The notes under the pieces were generated by a model, which saw nothing but the letters and a program-made list of their open reading frames with translations, searched no databases and was not told the DNA's origin. This document shows, in pieces, positions 1 to 26,590 of a DNA stretch of 64,000 bases. The position numbers and the translations under genes were made by a program. The DNA comes from Caecitellus pseudoparvulus (taxonomy: Eukaryota; Protista; Bigyra: Bicosoecida): the NCBI GenBank assembly GCA_965644315.1, contig CBFFRQ010000080.1, forward strand, positions 310,001 to 374,000, written 5' to 3'. The first letter of the stretch is position 1, and each line of letters begins with the position of its first letter.

Positions 1-1787
1 CGCAAGCAATGTTGCAAGTTCATCCAGCCAGCCTCCTCGGCGGTGGGGGGCCACATGTACGGCGCCAAGCGCCCAGCAGCCACGGAGCCATCACCACCTG
101 CCTGAGCCTCTGCCAGCGACGCCTCAGCCGCCTCCACAGCCGCCTGGGCCTCAGGCGTTGGGCTGCCTGCGTCGTCCCCTTCGCCGGCGTCCACGGAGCT
201 CTCATACCTTGCCCGCTTGGCGGTCTTCAGCGCGTTGCGAGCCCGTCGCACGGACGCAGCCTGCGCCCCTGCCGCGCGTGCAGCGTCGTACGTGGGGTAC
301 ACCTTCATGGCCGAGTCAAAGACGGTCCAGGTGCTGATGCCTGGCCGGCGCTTGAGACCTGGGAGGGCGGCAGAGGTGTCCACGAGCTCCAGGTTGCCCC
401 GGAACTCCCGCAGGAGCTGGGCCACGATGGCTTCGTCCTCGATGGGGTTGAAGGTGCAGGTGGAGTACACCATGAGGCCGCCAACCTTGAGGATGGCCAC
501 GCCACGCCGGGCGATGGCCAGCTGCAGGGGTGCCAGCACGATGCCGTTGCGGGGGGTCCAGTTCTTCCACGCCTCGGCGGTCTTGCGCAGCGTGCCGTCG
601 CCGCTGCAGGGCGCGTCGCACAGGATGCGGTCGAACATGCCATGGCGCATACGTGCCGAGGGGCCAGAGCGCACCGGGCGTGGTGCCCCTGCTTCAATGG
701 CCGCGGACAGCTCTTCCATCTCCTGCCGCGCCTTGACCAGGGCCTCAGCAGCAGCAGCGACGGCGTTGCCGGCAGGGGGCCCCTCGGGTCCGGGGTGCAC
801 CCATGGCTCCACGATGGGCTGCATGGACCCCGCCCCCTTGATGTGGAAGACGTTGGGCACTGACCGACCGTCGTTGCAGGTGACTGCCAAGGAGGCGGAC
901 TGCAGGGGGCGCAGGCGGTGAGACATCATGTACGCACGCTGGGGGTTGGTGTCGTTGGCCATGACGATGCCGGTAGGGGCAGGGCCACCCTTCACGTGCT
1001 GCGCGTGCAGCGCCTCTAGGAGCTGGGCAGTCTTGCTGCCCGGCGCTGCGCACATGTCCAGGACGATGTGGTGCGGCTGCACATCCAGGAGGAGGGGGGG
1101 GATCATGGACACAGCTTCCTGCCGAAGGATGTCTCCCGTCTCCGTGAATAGCTTCAGCCACTCATGGAAGGCCTTGAGCTGGGGCAGGCGCCGCAGGTCT
1201 CGGCGCGCCAAGGACACGTTCCATGCAGCGTGGTGTGGCACCCAGGGCAGGGAGGTGGGGGCGTCCACTCGTGCGGGAAGTGTGCGCTTCAGGCGCACCA
1301 TGCCGTCGTCTTCCAGGACGCTCACGACGACGTTGGGGTTCGAAGCGTACTCCTCTGGAGAAGAAGCTTTGCCAGTGCCCTGCGTCGACATCACAGCTGC
1401 TGCGGCGGCGTCCTTTTCGCCCTCTGGAGCTGCGGCTGCCGCGGCAGCAGCGGCTGCTTTCGCTGCCTCCGCGCCAGCCGCCAAAGCTTCGCGGTCAGCC
1501 TGCAGGGCCGCATGAGCCGCCTCAAACAGGGAGGGAAAGCGCTCCTGCAGATCTTTCACCAGGGCAGGTGTCAGGGGGCTGTGCTGGTTCATGCGGAAGG
1601 CCGTGGGCAGCGGCGTGAGGAGGGTAGCGGAAAATGCATCCCACTCGTGTTCGCCCACAATGCCCTGTGCCTTGTAGTACGTGTCAAAGTCGGGGTGCCC
1701 CAGCTGCATGCTCTTGGCTCGGACATCACGCGTGTCGACATTGCGCTTCTTGTTGTTCCACTTCTTTCCCTTCTTGTTGCGGGCCAT
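1..1787 (-). CDS. NSUN2: tRNA (cytosine-C5) methyltransferase NSUN2/Trm4; 3' end runs off the window
   Basis: Manual translation from the ATG at 1787: MARNKKGKK...FDTYYKAQGIVGEHEWDAFSATLLTPLPTAFRMN, VLDMCAAPGSKTAQLLEALH, FDRILCDAPCSGDGTLRK, MVYSTCTFNPIEDEAIV. Absent from the ORF track, presumably because no stop codon lies in the window. Confidence 0.93.
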   Translation of the reverse strand, partial: MARNKKGKKWNNKKRNVDTRDVRAKSMQLGHPDFDTYYKAQGIVGEHEWDAFSATLLTPLPTAFRMNQHSPLTPALVKDLQERFPSLFEAAHAALQADREALAAGAEAAKAAAAAAAAAAPEGEKDAAAAAVMSTQGTGKASSPEEYASNPNVVVSVLEDDGMVRLKRTLPARVDAPTSLPWVPHHAAWNVSLARRDLRRLPQLKAFHEWLKLFTETGDILRQEAVSMIPPLLLDVQPHHIVLDMCAAPGSKTAQLLEALHAQHVKGGPAPTGIVMANDTNPQRAYMMSHRLRPLQSASLAVTCNDGRSVPNVFHIKGAGSMQPIVEPWVHPGPEGPPAGNAVAAAAEALVKARQEMEELSAAIEAGAPRPVRSGPSARMRHGMFDRILCDAPCSGDGTLRKTAEAWKNWTPRNGIVLAPLQLAIARRGVAILKVGGLMVYSTCTFNPIEDEAIVAQLLREFRGNLELVDTSAALPGLKRRPGISTWTVFDSAMKVYPTYDAARAAGAQAASVRRARNALKTAKRARYESSVDAGEGDDAGSPTPEAQAAVEAAEASLAEAQAGGDGSVAAGRLAPYMWPPTAEEAGWMNLQHCL

Positions 1788-17681: not shown

Positions 17682-19881
17682 CCAAGCCTCCACAACCAGT
17701 CGCCCCTGCCTGCGCATGGTGCTGAGCAGCGCTTTGGCAGCGCCCTGGCCACCGCACGAGTGTGCCAGGATGGTTTGCAAAATGTCCAAGACATCAGCCG
17801 GCATTCGCTTGGCACTGCCCGCAATGTACACACATGAGCACGGGTGCTGCAGCGCGGTGCTCACCGAGTCGCGTTGTTCCCACAGTTTCGTCTGCACGTA
17901 CACCTTGCTGGGTCCATCGCGGCTGAAAGCAGTGGAGATGGCTGACAGCTCACCTTGTGCCACGTGGTCTGCCCACTCAGAGGCGTACAGGTAATCCTGG
18001 CTTTCTTTTCGACATCCAAAGTACAGCCTGATGTCCCAGTCTTCTGGTGCCCCCGGCGCGCCTTTCAGCACGTTTGCTGCTTGCCGGATCAAACTACGCA
18101 TTGGGGCAACCCCTGTGCCAGGGCCAATGAGCAAGACGGGACCTCGGCGCTCTGCCGAGGTCCCGGTGCTGGGCAAACCTAGGTCCGTGTATGGCCTTGG
18201 CAGGCGCAGTGTGCCTGGTTCAAGACACATCAGCACGGAGGTGGCTCGTGGTGCTGCTCCCTGCGGCGAAGCAGGCAGCCCGGCAAGAAAGGAGGAACAC
18301 AAGCCGGATATCGATCGCTTGTGAGGTGTCGTGAAGTTCACCACAGCAACACAAAGGTGCAGCTTGGGAGCGTCGCTGGGCGCTGAGGCGATTGAAAACT
18401 TGCGCGGTTGCAGAGGTGGCAGCAGCTCGAGCAGGGCTTCGAGGGGCGGCTTCAAGGATGTGAAGTCCTCCAGCACTTCCACGATGTTCCTACGCTCCCG
18501 CTTGATGTATGAGGCGTACAGGTCTGCTCCGCCTGGCGCAGAAATCTCCACCAACTTCTCTGCCTGCTCAGGGTCACTCGCGAAGAAGGACAGCTGCTCA
18601 AACACACTCCGTTTGGGGGTACCTGTGATATCAACATAGTGAGTAAGCAGCTCTTGAACTGTGGCTTGAGGCGGCAGCTTGTGCAGTGGGCCTGTCGGCT
18701 GTGCCGTGCCATTGCGCGACAGCTGCAGCGCTGCTTGGACTGCAGTTGCCCCGGACACACTCGCGCTCTCTTGTTCCTGCCCCCGCAATGAAATGCAGAG
18801 GCGCGTCTCAAGTGGAATGCTCAACGCATCGCACAACCGTGCCACGAGGGTCTGTGGGTTTTCTGGCCAGATGCAGGCAATGTCGCCTGCTGAGTATCGG
18901 GGGGCATCCGAAGGCAGTTCAAACTCCAAGTGGCGAACATCTTGACTCCATCCAGGCTGAGTCAGTCGAGTGTTTACAAGCATATTTGCCTTGAAAATTG
19001 CCTTGCTTCGTTCTCCCAATGCGTTTGAGGGTGGGTCGGGCGGCAGAGAGCGGCTGGCTCCTCCAGGGGTGGCAGCTTCATGCTGCGCCGCGGAGACTGG
19101 AGCGAGCCTCAGCGAGTATCGACTGGCAAATTGCTCAGGCGCATCATCAACAATCCATCCAGCTGGAAGCGGATACTTCTGCAGCAAAGCTCCCCACATC
19201 ACTTCAAGCCACGACTCCAAATCTCCTGCATGCGGTGACATCAGTTTCTGCGCCCACCAAAGCGAAGCCACGAGCGCCGAGCCAGGCACGTACCATCCAT
19301 GCCAAGGGGTTCACTTTGGTCATCTCCCAGGCCTCTTGGGCAAAATTCCGTCGCACCCAGCTGGAGGAAACGCCTGTGCAGCTTCCTGGCAACAGCATTG
19401 AAAGCTGCATAAGCGCTGTCTCCAAGACCGAACACGGAGAACTCCACGGCCTTCAGAGCAGTCGCAGGAAGGTCAGTTCGCAACAGAAATCTCCAAAAGG
19501 CCTGTGCTCCGCAGGGGCAACAAATACTCGTTCTGGGACTGCTCCCATTCCCGCCCCGAAAAGCGCCATCTCACCTTCATGTTGTCAGGCGGATCCCCAT
19601 CACCAGTCGTGGCTGCCACCAGCACCACTGTTCTGGAAGAGGGTAGGGCTACGAGAGGAAAGGCATCCATGGAGCTCAACGTCACGTTGAAAGCCCGTTT
19701 GCGCGCCATTCGCCCAATCCGTTCTGCGACATCCTGCGCCAGCGTGCCGATGTGCAGTGCCCTGGTGCAGATTGCGGAAGCTGCGGAAACCACGCACTTG
19801 GGCTGTTCCTGTCTGACTAGCATAAAGTACTGTAAGCGTTCGCTCCGGCTGTTTGGCTGGACTAGAAGCTGCAGCGGCCAT
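17676..19881 (-). CDS. NDOR1: NADPH-dependent diflavin oxidoreductase 1 (Tah18/NDOR1); 3 introns in the 5' part
   Basis: Flavodoxin motifs [48 protein letters not shown]..FN and GLGDDQ. FAD/NADPH motifs PRKFSIAS, IGPGTGVAPMRS, YFGCR and AFSRD. C-terminus EAWS. Confidence 0.93.
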
Positions 19882-20132
19882 GGTGGGCCTCAAAGGGACG
19901 GCGTTGCGCCGGCGTTTCGTGGGGGGGTGCTGAGGCTTGTCAGCGGAACATGGCTTGTGGAATTCACATTCCAAAATAGTTTTGTTGAGCTCAATGCCGT
20001 GAAACCTTCGAGAGTTTGTTGTACTTTCCGCGTTTGCCCACTTCAGGTGCCCCCTTCTGCGTATCGCACTTGCTTGTGCTACGCGCTTGGCGTGGTGCGC
20101 ACTTCTTCGCTGCCACCGAGTTCCTGAGCGCC

Positions 20133-23100
20133 ATGGCGGCACAGGAAGCGTGCAAGTATTTCCTTGATGTCGACGCACCTAGGGGAACTGTGGCGGACGT
20201 TTTCAGGGCATTAGGCGTCCGGGGCCTGCGAGCAGTCACAGTCGTGCACCTTGACGATGAGGCTGACGAGCTCGATCACGCGAACCAGTCCGTCGACGGA
20301 GAAGGAGGTGTGCATATCGCTCACAGTACTCGCAAAAACCCCACCATGCAGCGTGCGGCTGAATCGGCAAGGGTTGGGGATGCGCCTGCAGGAACTCCAA
20401 CTGCTATAGGCGAGCGCCGGCAGCGCCCCGTCAGCATCAGCGGTGACTATCACTTCCGGCTGCACTTCGACAGAAAAGCTGAGCGGGACTACGCTTTTGG
20501 TATCCTAAAAAATAGGTCTGTAGAGGGCATCAGAATGCTCCCCAGGATGGGGCGCACGGCCACGGGCAGGGACTTCGCCTGCCCTCCAGTTCGTGCTATT
20601 GAAGAGCGACGCGATCCCAGACAAGAGTCACTGGCGGCGTTCTTGGAGTGGATGAAGCACAGCGAAGATAGCATGCCATGCAGCTGGTGGGAGGAAGATT
20701 CGGATCTGCTGAACAAGGGCAGTCTGAGGGAGCTGGCCACCAGGGTTGAGGCAGTCTTAGCTGCTGCAGAAACTGCGCACCTCGCAGTCTCCGATCGGAC
20801 CGGACCATCCACTCCTGCGAGTGCTCACAAGCGGAGTGTCTCTGCACCATGTGGCCGTGGTATGGGCTCATATGTGCCAGATGGTACCTCCTTCCAACAT
20901 CGTGTGGGAAGTGTGACTGGTGTGGACCTGCCGGCAGAGCATACGCCGCCGGCTGTGTCTGCAGCAAGCGATGGATCGTCTCTTCCAGGGGCACCCTGCC
21001 GAAGTATTTCCACACAAAAGTCTTACGCTGAAGTTACCAGTACACCAAGCTTGCCTACTCCAGTAAAATCGCCACCCAATGCCGCAACCCGTCAGCACAG
21101 CAGCAAGCTGCTTGCGCAAGGGGAGCCCATCAAAGCTCCCGAGGTGCACCGTGGCGCATGGCCAACGCTGGGCGAAGTGCTGGAAGGTGCTCTGCACGGA
21201 TCAAAGGCGTTCAAAGATGCCACCGTGTCAGGAACACTGCAGGGCTTCCCACTTGGTGGGGACGAAGGTTGGGGTTACGGCACACCGTCGGAAACCACGC
21301 AAAGTGTAGGGCGTGCTTGGAAACGGCCTGGGAGAGAAAAGAAAGAAGTCTCGTTGGATGAGTGCGTGGGGGTCCTTCTGGGAGGGCGGTTCGTCGTCAA
21401 CGCGGTCACCCTGGATCGCACACGGAGAGACTACGCCGCGAACTCGTGGGCTCGTTGGCGCCAAGCACAGCTTGAGAAAGCTGTGTCTTTACCTGCTTGC
21501 GACGCTGCTGTTCAGCAGGGATTTCCGGTGCCTAAAGACAAAGTCATGTTTTGGCGCCGCATGTTAGGCCTGGTGGACCCAGTGGAATTGGACCAGGAAG
21601 CAGCAGGGGAGTGCCCGCAAGAAGGATACAGCGCGATCTCAGGGTCAGAATTCGATGGGCGAACAGTAATGCGTGCCTGGGACACTGTTCTGGGAGAAGA
21701 GGTCATGCTGAAGATTCACACAAGCTACAGTGCCTTCAAAGCCGAGTCTGCGGCGTTGAAGAAGATTTTACTTGGTTCGCCTTGGAGAATTGCACCCAGC
21801 GTTGACCAGGAGTTCACGATGTGCATTGGCTTTTCAGTCGAATCAAGTGCGGCTAATGCGACTGAAAGTGGAGACTCATGGCGAAAAGACTGTGCAGCAA
21901 ACACAGAAGCTGATGACAGCGACGGCACCTTGGAGGATGGAAGTACGGCAAAGTCTTCTGGAGGTGCGCCCGATGCAACGTCGAGCAGTGGGTCCTTTGA
22001 GGCTTGGAATCCGGTACTGCTGAAGAGCCGCTCGGTCTCTTCCCAGCGAAGCGATGCGAGCAGTCCGCTCATCGAGCACTTCCTGGACAGCCGGCAGCTT
22101 CACGAGTCAACACTTGGGCGAGATCATGGGCATGGGTACATCAGAGAGGAGTTTAGGGAAAAGTTCCGTCCCTACCTTTGCCACGTCATTGTCATGTCAG
22201 CTGGCGATGTTGCTGCAAGTCTTGACGTCGTTTCGCAGCTTCCGGAGCACTTGGAAGACCCGGGGGGCCAGCGCAGAGCCGCGGACCACATGATGCTGGC
22301 GGTGAACTCCTTGCACCACCACAAGCTGATGCACGGCTGCATCGCACCCTGGCATTTTGTGCGTTTCACAGAGAGGGCTTCTCCGACTGACTTCTACCAA
22401 TCCCTGCTTGATCGCATGCTGAAGCCTCGAGATCGACAGAAAGACTTCTCCTCCGAAATGGACGAGTTCATGAAGTCGGAACACGAAGGGCAAGCGCTGG
22501 CTCGTTCTCAACAGCCTTCTCGAAGCAGCTCTTGGTCCCTTATCAGCTTCTCCGCCTCAACTGAGCTGAGCAGCAAGTTCTGTCCCTGCCTTCAGCATGC
22601 GTGGCACAGCTACTGTTCACCCATGGCAGCTGCCGCTGTTTTAGCAGCTTTAAAAACCAGCGGACATGCAGTGGGGGTTCCGCAAGCCCTCCTAGACAAG
22701 TTTCAGGAAGTCCTGCCCAACGGTGAAGCAGACGCTGCAGCAGACGCTGCAGCAGACGCTGCAGCAGACGCAGGTCAAGCTCGGGGGGCGCGGCGACTTA
22801 ATCTCGGCTCCATCATAGCGCACATCTATCATGACATCTTCCCACTTGGCCTCACCCTGTACAAGTTGGTGATGGGATGTGATTTTGAGTGGGACGCACG
22901 CAGGAGGGCTGTTGAAGATGGAGACGCGGGGAGACTGGTGCCAGCTACATTGGAGCCAATTTGGAGTCAGACAGCCCGTTTGTTTGAGGAGGAGGTAATC
23001 GCTCAGAGCTCTCCTGCAGCACCTTCGGCTGAGCCTCTGGCACGAGCTGGCGAACAGATTGCCCGTCGTGGGCAACATGCCGAGGTGTGTGAAGCTCAGC

Positions 23101-24599
23101 AGCAGCGAACTAGAAAGCTGAAGGCCATTTGGTACGCTGCAACACTGGATCTCGGCCCAGAGCGGGAAGATGGTGCCCCCAAAGTACCGGGAGTAGACGC
23201 AGGTGCAGCGATGGAGCTCGGGGCAACGGTGCCGTCTGCCGCTTTCGTGGCGGTTGACGGGGCTGTACGTTCTCCACAGCTTCCAGCCAATGGGCTTCGC
23301 AGTGTCATCAGCAGCTTACTGTCGCGGGATCCAGGGGATGTGACGGAGAAATGTTTGGAAGTGGCCATTGAACAGCTTGCTGGTTCAATGGGGGGAACAA
23401 AGGGGAAGCTGCAAGTGCTGGCCGCGCTGGCAAACCCGAAAATGCCTTCTCCGTCGCCTCTCACAAGGTCACGCATGGTCCTTAACCAACATAGTGAATG
23501 GACTCAACTGACAGATTTGTACAGCTGGGGTGTTGCGAAGGTGCTGTCCACATGCAGCTGGGAAGATCTGAAAGCCGACCTGGCCAACGGAAAGCCATGT
23601 GTTCTCCAATTCGCGGGCCACGCTGACAGCTCGGCAAGGCACATTGCTTTTGAACAACCCGAAAAGGGCTCATCCGGCTTTGCTGATCCCTTCTGCTTGG
23701 ATTGGGACATGTTTGCGGACCAGATTGAAGCGCACAACAACTCGCACACCCCCAAAGTGGAGTGCATCTTCCTCAACGCATGCGATTCCGTTGGGCTCGC
23801 GATTGAAATTGTCAAGCGCTGCCCAGATGTCATGTGCATCGCTTGGGATGGGCCGGTCATGGACGCAGCAGCGCGAGCATTTGCCGTCCATTTCAACTAC
23901 GAGCTGGCAGCACAGCTGTCCAGTGCCGAGCGAGCTCGTCAGGCACCTCGCATACCTGTAGGGCAAGCTTGTGCAGGCGCGGGAGCAAGTGAAGTGCAAC
24001 CGGCACAGACCTCCATGCAGCAAGGTTCCATTCAGACGACCAAAGATTTGGTGCAGTACATGAACGCGAACGGCATCTCAAACACTGTGTTTGTCCAAGT
24101 TCGCGCGGCAGCCTACCACCACTCCCCACAGCTTCGGGCCAAGGAAGCGAACTTTGCTATCCCACCGACGGGAGAGTCAGAGGACGTGTACAAGGCTCTG
24201 CTTGAGGGGGTCTTGGGGGGGAAGTCAGAATTCGAGGAGGCCTCCAAAGTCGAGGAGGCCTCCAAAGTCGGGGAAGCCTCCGCTCTGAAAACCTCCTTTG
24301 CCAAGGCTTTCAGGGTGGGGGTGCGGGGTTTGCGTGTCCAAGGCTACAACGTAGGCCACTTTCTGAAATCGGAAAGCCCGAAGGAAACCAAAGAGGACAT
24401 TCCTTCGTCGCGCTTGCAGAAGTTTGGTGTCCAGCGAAACCCTTTCGTGGCGCCTGCCTGCCAAGGGATTCCGGTTCTCGTGCACAAAGGCTGCACTGGG
24501 GAGAAGCTGAGGAACAAACTAGACAGTCTGAACAAACTGAAGACGCGCGGCAAGGTTGGGCTCCCTGGGTACTTTCTGCCTACCAAACGAAGCAAATAG
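20133..24599 (+). CDS. Large intronless protein: RRM-like N-terminus, degenerate protein-kinase (pseudokinase) domain and C-terminal CHAT (caspase-like, clan CD) protease domain
   Basis: Single open frame of 4.5 kb. Kinase subdomains occur in order (VMRAWD..EEVMLK, FKAE, HVIVM, LHHHKLMHGCIAPWHFV, WSLISF, DIFPLGLTLYKL, ISSLLSRDP). CHAT motifs VLQFAGHA (His 23619-23621) and CIFLNACDS (Cys 23781-23783). Confidence 0.75.
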   Translation: MAAQEACKYFLDVDAPRGTVADVFRALGVRGLRAVTVVHLDDEADELDHANQSVDGEGGVHIAHSTRKNPTMQRAAESARVGDAPAGTPTAIGERRQRPVSISGDYHFRLHFDRKAERDYAFGILKNRSVEGIRMLPRMGRTATGRDFACPPVRAIEERRDPRQESLAAFLEWMKHSEDSMPCSWWEEDSDLLNKGSLRELATRVEAVLAAAETAHLAVSDRTGPSTPASAHKRSVSAPCGRGMGSYVPDGTSFQHRVGSVTGVDLPAEHTPPAVSAASDGSSLPGAPCRSISTQKSYAEVTSTPSLPTPVKSPPNAATRQHSSKLLAQGEPIKAPEVHRGAWPTLGEVLEGALHGSKAFKDATVSGTLQGFPLGGDEGWGYGTPSETTQSVGRAWKRPGREKKEVSLDECVGVLLGGRFVVNAVTLDRTRRDYAANSWARWRQAQLEKAVSLPACDAAVQQGFPVPKDKVMFWRRMLGLVDPVELDQEAAGECPQEGYSAISGSEFDGRTVMRAWDTVLGEEVMLKIHTSYSAFKAESAALKKILLGSPWRIAPSVDQEFTMCIGFSVESSAANATESGDSWRKDCAANTEADDSDGTLEDGSTAKSSGGAPDATSSSGSFEAWNPVLLKSRSVSSQRSDASSPLIEHFLDSRQLHESTLGRDHGHGYIREEFREKFRPYLCHVIVMSAGDVAASLDVVSQLPEHLEDPGGQRRAADHMMLAVNSLHHHKLMHGCIAPWHFVRFTERASPTDFYQSLLDRMLKPRDRQKDFSSEMDEFMKSEHEGQALARSQQPSRSSSWSLISFSASTELSSKFCPCLQHAWHSYCSPMAAAAVLAALKTSGHAVGVPQALLDKFQEVLPNGEADAAADAAADAAADAGQARGARRLNLGSIIAHIYHDIFPLGLTLYKLVMGCDFEWDARRRAVEDGDAGRLVPATLEPIWSQTARLFEEEVIAQSSPAAPSAEPLARAGEQIARRGQHAEVCEAQQQRTRKLKAIWYAATLDLGPEREDGAPKVPGVDAGAAMELGATVPSAAFVAVDGAVRSPQLPANGLRSVISSLLSRDPGDVTEKCLEVAIEQLAGSMGGTKGKLQVLAALANPKMPSPSPLTRSRMVLNQHSEWTQLTDLYSWGVAKVLSTCSWEDLKADLANGKPCVLQFAGHADSSARHIAFEQPEKGSSGFADPFCLDWDMFADQIEAHNNSHTPKVECIFLNACDSVGLAIEIVKRCPDVMCIAWDGPVMDAAARAFAVHFNYELAAQLSSAERARQAPRIPVGQACAGAGASEVQPAQTSMQQGSIQTTKDLVQYMNANGISNTVFVQVRAAAYHHSPQLRAKEANFAIPPTGESEDVYKALLEGVLGGKSEFEEASKVEEASKVGEASALKTSFAKAFRVGVRGLRVQGYNVGHFLKSESPKETKEDIPSSRLQKFGVQRNPFVAPACQGIPVLVHKGCTGEKLRNKLDSLNKLKTRGKVGLPGYFLPTKRSK
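22728..22772 (+). repeat. 12-bp coding tandem repeat GCAGACGCTGCA x3.75 (ADAA)
   Basis: Directly visible in the sequence. Confidence 0.9.
24234..24281 (+). repeat. 18-bp coding tandem repeat GAGGAGGCCTCCAAAGTC x2 plus a degenerate third copy (EEASKV)
   Basis: Directly visible in the sequence. Confidence 0.9.
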
Positions 24600-24817: not shown

Positions 24818-26590
24818 ATGGACTCAACAGAGACTAGAGGTTTCACTGTCGAGTCAGTTGGGGCTTTCGTGGCGAAGTTCAGAGGTGGGCAGCGTTCCCA
24901 GCAGCACGCATCAAATTCCACCCCAGTGACTCCTGCCAAGCAGCAGCCTAGGCGGGCAGGAGTAGCCACATATATGCAGCCTACAGTTTCCACACTCGTT
25001 CGGCATGGAAGAGAGCATGACGAGCCTAGAATTGGGCTTGGCGTGATGGGAGCTTCGCCGAAGGCCAGGCTGGTGTTGAGCGCAGAGCAACACCAATCTC
25101 CGCAGGGTGCTACACGCACGGACGCGAGTGCCCAAAGCGATGGAGCACCATCTCTGCCCATGAGGACCCGATTACCTATGCGGGAATTTGAGGATCAAGC
25201 ACATGCTGGCACTCCGGCGACTTCAACTACCATTCAAGAGCCGGTCGGGGCGGAGCCCGAGGATCGACAGCAGCCCGCCTTGCAGATCGTTGCTGCCGAG
25301 AGTAGTGCTGTAGTGGATCATGCACGCCCGATCAGGCTCTCTTCTAACTTTCCCGAATATGACGCACAGGCACTGTATGAGTGTGAAGCCTTGTGTGGGA
25401 CGCACGGTGCGCGGACCTCGGCGCATCGGAGCTCGAAACCTCCACCTCCAAGCGGCAAGCGCCCGCTCGACGCAGTGCGTATTCAAGAGCGGGGGGCAAC
25501 CCCCCCCAAGTGTACTGCTCCTGCCAATGTGCAGCAATCCTCAAGGTTCGAGGTCGAACGGACTTGTTTTGAAGTGTACCGGGGCGAGGGGGACTGGCTC
25601 CAACCCCAGTACACGTCGCTGGTGTCGCGGACTCTGGCCAAGTCGACGGAAGAGGTGCTTGCCGCCGCAGCCGCCGCAGACTTACAAGCAGCAGATAGGT
25701 TTAAGGAACAGGCTGCTGCACAGCGGCAGATGGCCTTGGCGCAAGCACAGCTTCGCTCGGAGCAAGACCGGCTGATGCACCAGGACGCGTTGCGCCAAGC
25801 CAAGGAACTGCAGGAGCAGATCGACGAGGCAAACGAGCTGCTCTTGAAGCGAGCAACTGAGCGAGAGAACGCAACAAAGCGATTGTTGGCAGCCCATCCG
25901 TCTGCGATTTCCGGTGCCGCCATGGCAGTCGCACAAGAGCTCACTAGATCACCTGGTGAGGAGGCCTCGGCAGAGGCACCCAGCATTTCCGATGCAGCTT
26001 CACTTTCTCGTAATTGGACTCGTGGGCTGGGAATCTCATCTGGGCCGGCACCTGCATCTCTGGGCGTGCTACCTTGGGGGGGGGTGCACTCGACCAGTGG
26101 AGAGGTTGCAGCCAGCCGTCCTTGGTTGCAGAGGAGCTTCACCGCTCGTGACCTCGCCGACGAGGCCAGTGGCTCTAAAGCGCGTAGCGCCTTGGACAAT
26201 GCCAAACAGTTGGGCAGCCCTCGTCCTCCTTCATTGTCCGGGGTCCAGTCTGCGAGGGTAGGAGCAGGGCAAACAACCCACGAGTGCTCACCGGCACTTG
26301 CCACCATACCCACGCGACCTTCAAAACCACCGCGCTCAGATGCCGAATCCAAGGCTGCAGCAAGTTCAAGAAAAGCTTCCTCCGGGATTGTCTCATCGAG
26401 CATGGGCACACCGGTCGATTTGCGGCGCACAGGCTCGACCCGTCGTGGGCCACGAGTAGCTGCTGCTGCGGTTGACCACATCTCGCCCATGACAGCAGCC
26501 CTTGTGGACGACAGAAAGTCAGCTGAGACTTCAAGCAAGGGGGAACTCCAATCAAGCCTTCCATCGTCGCTGCATTGGAGCTGGAAGTAG
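24818..26590 (+). CDS. Hypothetical protein, largely disordered, with a central coiled coil
   Basis: 590-aa ORF that fills the gap between its neighbours. Heptad-like segment (AAAQRQMALAQAQLRSEQDRL..ELQEQIDEANELLLK). No family recognised. Confidence 0.6.
   Translation: MDSTETRGFTVESVGAFVAKFRGGQRSQQHASNSTPVTPAKQQPRRAGVATYMQPTVSTLVRHGREHDEPRIGLGVMGASPKARLVLSAEQHQSPQGATRTDASAQSDGAPSLPMRTRLPMREFEDQAHAGTPATSTTIQEPVGAEPEDRQQPALQIVAAESSAVVDHARPIRLSSNFPEYDAQALYECEALCGTHGARTSAHRSSKPPPPSGKRPLDAVRIQERGATPPKCTAPANVQQSSRFEVERTCFEVYRGEGDWLQPQYTSLVSRTLAKSTEEVLAAAAAADLQAADRFKEQAAAQRQMALAQAQLRSEQDRLMHQDALRQAKELQEQIDEANELLLKRATERENATKRLLAAHPSAISGAAMAVAQELTRSPGEEASAEAPSISDAASLSRNWTRGLGISSGPAPASLGVLPWGGVHSTSGEVAASRPWLQRSFTARDLADEASGSKARSALDNAKQLGSPRPPSLSGVQSARVGAGQTTHECSPALATIPTRPSKPPRSDAESKAAASSRKASSGIVSSSMGTPVDLRRTGSTRRGPRVAAAAVDHISPMTAALVDDRKSAETSSKGELQSSLPSSLHWSWK

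Follow-up and report, generated by a model that had tools for sequence, protein, structure and literature searches.

A predicted CHAT protease fused to a pseudokinase in a single intronless gene of the bicosoecid Caecitellus pseudoparvulus

To gain insight into a putative protease switch of the protist Caecitellus pseudoparvulus we analysed a 64,000 nucleotide long stretch of its genome (assembly GCA_965644315.1, contig CBFFRQ010000080.1, positions 310,001 to 374,000 of the forward strand), in the following called the window. The window contains an open reading frame (ORF) at 20133..24599 on the plus strand, which starts with an ATG at 20133, ends with a stop codon at 24597-24599 and encodes 1488 amino acids without an intron. 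We call its product the query. A preliminary description, made from the letters alone, had proposed that this frame joins an RRM-like domain, a dead kinase domain and a CHAT protease. The comparisons presented below show that the C-terminal domain has, by sequence and model, the fold of a CHAT, i.e. clan-CD, cysteine protease in which the catalytic pair is kept, such that activity is predicted. The middle region is, as judged from profile alignments, a pseudokinase derived from eukaryotic protein kinases (ePKs). The N-terminal module is real and probably ferredoxin-like, of an RRM-like or ACT-like kind as far as models can tell. We consider it reasonably likely that the whole protein is a cytosolic, multi-domain protease for signalling that is built from three successive parts and regulated by its N-terminal regions.

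Homologues were collected by an exhaustive phmmer search with residues 289-1488 against 1.84 billion representatives, which returned 32 hits. Two of these, P0001 (1544 amino acids, E = 2.5e-38) and P0002 (1295 amino acids, E = 2.6e-31), matched the middle as well as the C-terminal region, and the other 30 were confined to residues ~1088-1290. P0002 is a truncated gene call: the frame on its contig (L003:660-5888, plus strand) has 1742 codons, 447 more upstream, and the added upstream part holds an N-terminal module and a linker like those in the window. P0001 and the L003 frame align with the query over the entire length, and a Met-Ala start is common to all. A pattern scan of metagenomes recovered the P0001 contig again and nothing further. 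Whole-protein searches of Pfam and of the PDB sequences gave no match, and neither half of the protein was matched by PADLOC. A word-indexed homologue search, carried out with the query and with the alignment of the three orthologues, gave zero matches and missed even P0001, probably because low-complexity words swamp this kind of search.

For the C-terminal domain we aligned 31 sequences of the family. In this alignment Cys1217 is invariant, while Phe1160, Gly1162, His1163, Leu1214, Asn1215 and Trp1238 are nearly invariant. The corresponding family profile matched one solved structure in the PDB, the activated SAVED-CHAT filament 8tl0, with E = 5.8e-24. The FsGH and LNaC columns of the family align onto the His and the Cys of the 8tl0 chain. 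For SAVED-CHAT the catalytic dyad was reported to be H375/C422 at a distance of ~4 Å (10.1101/2023.06.23.546230), a numbering that equals the 8tl0 chain index + 20 as a constant offset. Since His1163 (nt 23619-23621) and Cys1217 (nt 23781-23783) occupy the same columns, we assign them as the catalytic dyad of the query; the cysteine codon is exactly the one that the preliminary description had named. In agreement with a clan-CD enzyme, the alignment columns place the His after strand 3 within G-H and the Cys after strand 4 within (N/S)-A-C.

The fold was modelled with AlphaFold2 from the family alignment, which provided a core with a predicted local distance difference test (pLDDT) score of 80-97. 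Foldseek again ranked 8tl0 first for this model (probability 1.0, E = 4e-9), with other peptidases of clan CD behind it. Structural alignment of the model with 8tl0 by VIA-align gave a Z score of 21.7 and a root-mean-square deviation of 2.1 Å over 185 residues. The next matches were legumain (Z 13.1) and caspases (~12), and then gingipain and GPI8. In the model and in both structural comparisons the domain thus has a caspase-haemoglobinase fold. The alignment to 8tl0 extends to model residue 367. A low-complexity insertion follows the core and separates its last helix from the C-terminal helix. The C-terminal helix and strand pack back onto the core (pLDDT ~90 at model residues 301-320 and 361-370) and align to the family consensus AFxAG...GFxxGDP...PPVxG..VL. 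The CHAT domain with an intact His/Cys pair, which had been proposed from short motifs, is hence borne out by profile, fold and conserved dyad columns.

For residues 1051-1330 the sole Pfam match was PF12770 at E = 0.011 and 15.7 bits versus a cut-off of 24, such that the match anticipated in the preliminary description is found weakly on the fragment but stays under the Pfam cut-off. Among the family, PF12770 matches 9 of 33 members at E <=0.01, five of them above the 24-bit cut-off and the best at 7.5e-10. CHAT membership of the query is therefore transitive: family members match PF12770, and the family profile matches the solved CHAT structure 8tl0. Language-model features of residues 1040-1488 pointed to CHAT clusters at 0.84, which serves as a lead only.

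The middle region of the query gave no direct Pfam kinase match. In four relatives a Pfam Pkinase domain lies directly N-terminal to the CHAT-type domain: P0007 (1.4e-19), P0014 (2.7e-18), P0016 (1.2e-23) and P0018 (1.4e-24). A profile of these four kinase domains matched 1165 solved kinases at E <1e-5, with Rad53, TTK, MK2 and CaMKII at 1e-16 to 1e-12, so that the four can be regarded as genuine ePKs. An alignment of residues 401-1000 of the three orthologues (A3) served as the query side in a comparison by hhalign. Against the profile of the four Pkinase domains A3 reached 97.9%, and 98.7% with E = 2.8e-16 at a permissive alignment setting. The permissive alignment ran collinearly from beta2 to subdomain XI and took in template columns 3-271 of 286. 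When the A3 profile was compared with the PDB, all 23 hits were kinases aligned at matching elements, but with E of only 0.65-2.4. By BLASTP, residues 1050-1083 matched subdomain XI of P0007, inside its Pfam Pkinase hit. Subdomain XI directly adjoins the first CHAT strand in the query and in P0007, and from this contiguity we conclude that the fusion junction is common to both proteins.

Aligned in this way, the catalytic Asp is replaced by Cys736, the catalytic-loop Lys by Ala738 and the DFG Asp by S805. The orthologues are also without these residues (HGSVAPQF and SFS in P0001; HTALNPSK and SAS in P0002). Phosphorylation by the standard mechanism is therefore not expected. A glycine-rich loop was not recognisable in the orthologue and kinase alignments. 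The dead kinase domain of the preliminary description thus stands, with one correction. The DFG residues are absent as claimed, but the register was off by one, with S805-F806-S807 (LISFSAS) rather than ISF at this position. The VAIK Lys and the alphaC Glu are kept in the query as K527 and E538, but the beta3 Lys is found only here and is Arg in both P0001 and P0002.

The relatives place the query in a wider context. P0007 (from EukProt) combines RRM_1, Pkinase and a CHAT-like domain, and P0014 consists of Pkinase and CHAT. Ankyrin repeats (Ank) precede Pkinase and the CHAT-like domain in P0016 as well as in P0033-36, which stem from ENA assemblies, and P0018 carries PfkB and Ank in front of the same pair. 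By its sequence the query belongs to a marine-protist family that fuses an apparently active kinase to this CHAT type with the same junction, and the N-terminal modules of this family are variable (RRM, ankyrin, PfkB plus ankyrin). The same CHAT subtype occurs with other partners in relatives, namely LRR, LRR-Roc-COR and REC-PNP-TRADD-N. One such protein, P0029 (897 amino acids), carries LRR, Roc, COR-A, COR-B and CHAT and is ROCO-like, with CHAT replacing the LRRK-type kinase position. P0039, a hypothetical protein of Prymnesium parvum, has this CHAT type with no kinase domain recorded. For P0001, P0014 and P0018 the contigs stem from metagenomes and are eukaryote-like. In the ESM Atlas the nearest shape was a haptophyte cluster, followed by bacterial CHAT-TIR, CHAT-NACHT and CHAT-EAD proteins.

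The same genome holds three further loci with this domain. On contig 56 (330476-339922, minus strand) a 3148 amino acid ORF contains CHAT at 2545-2703 (4.9e-10) followed by a STAND NTPase (AAA_16/NACHT/NB-ARC) at 2795-2993; these predicted domains make it NLR-like, with a caspase-like domain as part of the same chain. On contig 43 a 1865 amino acid ORF (645315-650912, minus strand) has an N-terminal CHAT-like domain, a STAND NTPase and a MalT-type TPR region, and a 772 amino acid ORF (493933-496251, minus strand) has a short partial CHAT-like segment and Kelch repeats. Pfam scans of the query did not detect the STAND/NACHT/NB-ARC NTPase domain that is present in its same-genome paralogues; a classification of the query as an NLR was rejected because of the missing NTPase domain. 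A quick maximum-likelihood tree of 41 CHAT domains placed the query, P0001 and P0002 in their own clade (SH-aLRT 91), apart from the same-genome STAND paralogues, but left many deeper forks unresolved. It cannot say whether the pseudokinase clade arose inside the active kinase-CHAT clade.

At the N-terminus the three orthologues follow the pattern hhhVD(T/A)P..T..V...F, a variable insert and W/Y-x-x-x-F-D...ERD.A, and then a helix with SLAxFLDW. Invariant positions within the module are D14, P16, T19, V20, F112, D113, E117, R118, D119 and A121. AlphaFold2 on the three-sequence alignment gave beta-alpha-beta, a disordered part at ~41-103 and a second beta-alpha-beta, with a mean pLDDT of 48; in RRM terms the order of elements would be that of an RRM with a 60-residue insert between beta2 and beta3. 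With this model VIA-align scored RRMs at Z 5.3-5.5 and ACT domains at Z 7.2 and 6.5, all of them values that are common for unrelated models. By sequence the module had zero Pfam hits at E <=10, RRM was not among the matches of its profile in the PDB, and a feature search of the ESM Atlas gave no usable match. Compared directly with the RRM of P0007, the module reached 7% in hhalign. Its beta3 segment, (K/Y)(W/H)(I/V/F)(A/R)(E/L)(F/H)FD, is not a canonical RNP1. The best argument for an RRM comes from position, as in P0007 the equivalent kinase-CHAT core is preceded by RRM_1 (6.7e-8). Of the RRM originally proposed, the order of strands and helices in the model and the Pfam RRM of P0007 remain in support, whereas a sequence match in Pfam or PDB is missing and ACT fits too.

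The gene itself could be followed in public sequencing runs, which for the most part are marine metagenomes. In the metatranscriptome run X7, contigs collinear with 20272-24579 showed zero joints. In the same run a 64 nt long GT..AG intron was spliced out at window position 19733-19796 on the minus strand, which shows that X7 contains RNA. This intron sits in the flavodoxin-like N-terminal part of the upstream gene for a diflavin reductase (NDOR1-like). Parts of the ORF were also covered in two RNA-Seq runs. Strain indels were seen in frame only (+3 nt at 21342 and -12 nt at 22724, within an ADAA repeat). The joint-free contigs, the RNA-Seq cover and the in-frame indels together indicate that the gene is real, transcribed and intronless, in agreement with the single frame of the preliminary description; the separate transcripts that it had named as a possible objection are not seen in the collinear contigs on 20272-24579. 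All motif strings that it had quoted are present once each, at the places it gave, and are listed together with the other features in Table 1. The open frame that contains the ORF starts upstream of the ATG, at 20016. In the 30.6-Mb assembly of 215 contigs the gene occurs once.

Table 1. Features of the query gene and protein. Residues are numbered from the ATG, nucleotides are positions in the window. The last column gives the counterpart in P0007 or in canonical kinases.
Feature	Residues	Window position	Strand	Basis or remarks	P0007/canonical
Whole gene		20133..24599	+	ORF list; single copy; joint-free metatranscriptome contigs; full-length orthologue alignment	
N-terminal module	8-138	20154..20546	+	conserved in three orthologues; AlphaFold2 topology	
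KYFLDV	8-13				
TVADVFRAL	19-27				
LRAVTVV	32-38				
YHFRLHF	106-112				
KAERDY...MLPR	115-138				
Helix motif SLAxFLDW...SW	166-185	20628..20687	+	invariant L167, F170, L171, W173, S184, W185; predicted helix 167-176	
Ser/Pro/Ala-rich low-complexity linker	~186-413	20688..21371	+	composition; few conserved orthologue columns	
Conserved segment preceding kinase (VLLGGRFVVNAVTLDRTRR ...)	414-504	21372..21644	+	invariant V414, R419, V422, A424, L427, D428, R429, R431, W474, R476, L478, G479	
Predicted pseudokinase	~505-1083	21645..23381	+	hhalign; BLASTP to P0007	
VMLK	524-527				
beta3 Lys	K527 (VMLK)				VALK
FKAE	535-538				
alphaC Glu	E538			invariant across orthologues	Glu
Large kinase inserts (four)	~563-680, 747-800, 842-897, 925-1045				
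Hinge	684-692 (HVIVMSAGD)				IIVMEAADT
HGCIAPWH	734-741				
Catalytic loop	H734-G-C736-I-A738-P-W-H741				H-C-D-I-K-A-A-H
DFG-equivalent	S805-F-S807				D-F-G
APE-equivalent	S829-P-M				S-P-E
(ADAA)n tetrapeptide repeat in kinase insert		22728..22772	+	length varies by strain; 12-nt in-frame deletion at 22724 in run X13 contig	
Subdomain IX	D901				Asp
Subdomain XI	~1062-1067 (LLSRDP)				
CHAT (clan CD, caspase-like) core, predicted	1092-1262	23406..23918	+	8tl0 profile match; AlphaFold2; Foldseek; VIA-align	
QFAGHA	1159-1164				
FLNACDS	1213-1219				
Low-complexity insertion in CHAT (~120 amino acids)	~1263-1385	23919..24287	+	only in query, P0001 and P0002; pLDDT 44-62	
C-terminal CHAT elements: helix FAKAFRVGVRGL, final strand IPVLVH	1386-1453	24288..24491	+	family alignment; pLDDT	

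The neighbours of the gene in the window are ordinary eukaryotic genes, encoding a Sen1-type helicase, a UCH-type deubiquitinase, a dynamin-like protein, the diflavin reductase and an O-GlcNAcase-like protein. A kinetoplastid origin of the DNA was rejected because the genes alternate between strands and because the adjacent gene has a spliced intron. On L003 an NDOR1-like diflavin-reductase gene likewise lies upstream on the opposite strand, such that the window and L003 are syntenic. Downstream of the query gene a 590 amino acid ORF (24818-26590, plus strand) has a Gln/Ala/Glu-rich stretch that resembles a coiled coil. It was rejected as a gasdermin-like substrate because it has no Pfam family match and because synteny is missing in L002, the contig of P0001, where it does not neighbour the orthologue.

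Taken as a whole, the protein probably works as a regulated signalling protease. The pseudokinase and the ferredoxin-like N-terminal domain would form the regulatory part, which may bind a ligand or a partner and would control self-association. Self-association would then switch on the CHAT protease, much as caspases and SAVED-CHAT are activated by proximity or filament formation, and the active protease may cut one or a few specific substrates and so start a stress, antiviral or cell-death response. We infer such a regulated switch from three observations: SAVED-CHAT is activated by filament formation (10.1101/2023.06.23.546230), CHAT proteases that sit on repeat or kinase-like sensors and activate gasdermins are described in a review on fungi, and STAND, TPR, LRR and TRADD-N partners occur with this CHAT type in relatives and same-genome paralogues. 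These partners, Roc-COR in addition, and the bacterial CHAT-TIR, CHAT-NACHT and CHAT-EAD proteins among the nearest ESM Atlas shapes provide a context for signalling or conflict. The control might be a gating by RNA or a nucleotide, as proposed in the preliminary description, but for RNA the comparisons above gave no support. In a broader and tentative view, marine algae (stramenopile- or haptophyte-type picoplankton) might possess an unrecognised class of innate-immune or cell-death switches in which a kinase fold directly gates a fused CHAT domain. The pseudokinase studied here might then be a ligand- or nucleotide-sensing switch, or else a decoy that catches viral effectors directed against the active kinase-CHAT relatives.

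Several points weigh against a regulated signalling protease with these domains. With the query alone, none of the Pfam cut-offs for CHAT, Pkinase and RRM is reached, and the assignment of the kinase comes from profile-profile alignment only. The pseudokinase subfamily has just three members (query, P0001 and P0002) at 23-30% identity in the phmmer search and the metagenome pattern scan. Near the locus no substrate candidate was found for the predicted protease. An immune or cell-death role is deduced solely from the association of this CHAT type with other domains. Finally, strain differences indicate that much of the protein may be weakly constrained: 15 synonymous and 25 nonsynonymous changes give a crude ratio of nonsynonymous to synonymous polymorphism (pN/pS) of ~0.5, an indicative value that covers the 40 listed of 67 differences. 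Within the CHAT core there were three among those listed, all of them synonymous.

Alternatively, the same domains could form a housekeeping or developmental protease, comparable to separase in the cell cycle or HetF in cyanobacterial differentiation, with the pseudokinase as a docking scaffold for a fixed substrate and with neither danger sensing nor death involved. A gene that is single copy, syntenic with the upstream diflavin-reductase-like gene in one relative and transcribed in ordinary seawater metatranscriptomes would suit such a role, as would the absence of the expansion or hypervariability that is typical of immune receptors. However, the subfamily is very narrow (three members, 23-30% identity) and, by the strain differences, fast-diverging, which is unlike a core housekeeping gene. 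This CHAT type furthermore accompanies STAND, TPR, LRR, Roc-COR and TRADD-N in relatives and paralogues. We regard the housekeeping role as unlikely, although it deserves consideration.

Also the kinase domain might not be dead. It could be an atypical enzyme or a nucleotide-binding module that relies on other residues, comparable to WNK, CASK or the pseudokinase AMPylators, and auto-modification could regulate the protease. The presence of K527 and of E538, the latter invariant in the orthologues, would be expected in this case. However, none of the three orthologues has the HRD Asp, the catalytic-loop Lys or the DFG Asp, P0001 and P0002 have Arg in place of K527 and a glycine-rich loop is not recognisable, which makes a live kinase quite improbable. 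A scaffold role of the CHAT domain without catalysis, as in the caspase-like domain of Raptor, which would turn the protein into an adaptor with two dead enzyme folds, is very improbable: Raptor is among the Foldseek fold matches, the query is under the Pfam CHAT cut-off and a 120-residue insertion interrupts the domain, but in 31 diverse members Cys1217 never varies and Gly1162, His1163, Asn1215 and Trp1238 hardly do, His1163/Cys1217 coincide with the proven SAVED-CHAT dyad, and the insertion falls after the core.

In recent work CHAT proteases have come to light as immune effectors of prokaryotes and fungi, with Craspase, SAVED-CHAT and gasdermin activation as examples. To our knowledge, the control of eukaryotic CHAT proteins has hardly been described. 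In the full text of open-access papers and preprints we found no description of a kinase-CHAT or pseudokinase-CHAT fusion in protists; the literature on CHAT together with kinases, pseudokinases, NLRs or algae consisted of SAVED-CHAT work, fungal immunity reviews and bacterial studies only. What is new is the type of regulatory module to which the CHAT effector is attached. Together with its relatives, the locus establishes a family of kinase-CHAT fusions in marine protists that are ecologically abundant. Some members of this family have an apparently active kinase and the query a dead one, two natural states that offer a testable system. With it one can ask if a kinase fold is able to gate a protease of the caspase-like type, and if picoplankton possess death or antiviral pathways that depend on proteases. 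The second question bears on bloom termination and on virus-host dynamics.

Among the known systems, the closest solved CHAT is SAVED-CHAT of Haliangium ochraceum (8tl0), which is part of a type III-B CRISPR/CBASS-derived protease cascade and shares ~23% identity. In both proteins the regulatory or sensor part is N-terminal and the CHAT effector C-terminal. The SAVED sensor, however, binds cA3 and forms filaments, whereas the query has a pseudokinase and a small ferredoxin-like domain instead. Moreover, the query is eukaryotic and monocistronic, it carries the 120-residue CHAT insert, and a PCaspase-like substrate gene is not evident. In TPR-CHAT (Csx29 of the type III-E CRISPR Craspase) and in the CHATs that activate gasdermins of fungi and bacteria the effector is restrained by an attached sensor or repeat and is freed upon recognition. 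In contrast to Craspase, the query is without TPR and gRAMP partner, and no gasdermin-like gene was recognised among its neighbours. We regard the relation to these systems as shared CHAT membership plus analogy and not as orthology.

The CHAT-STAND NLR-like proteins, including the same-genome paralogues, belong to the same effector class, but the query is without a STAND/NACHT NTPase or repeat sensor and its CHAT domain is distant from that of the same-genome CHAT-STAND paralogues in the quick tree. With the kinase-CHAT relatives (P0007, P0014, P0016, P0018 and P0033-36) the query shares the CHAT subtype, the kinase-then-CHAT order and the junction. These relatives keep HxDxK and DFG/DLG/DYG and pass Pfam Pkinase, whereas the subfamily of the query has lost these features and gained four large inserts. 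Their N-termini consist of RRM_1, Ank or PfkB plus Ank versus the beta-alpha-beta module in the query.

A dead kinase domain that is joined to an effector is also found in MLKL, a pseudokinase with a four-helix-bundle killer domain, and in RNase L, a pseudokinase with a KEN nuclease. By analogy, the dead kinase fold of the query may act as an allosteric or oligomerisation switch for its fused effector. The effector differs, being a predicted clan-CD protease, and no sequence relationship to either protein was seen, the PDB profile matches being generic kinases at E ~1. If true, a kinase-gated CHAT switch would be the protease counterpart of MLKL and RNase L.

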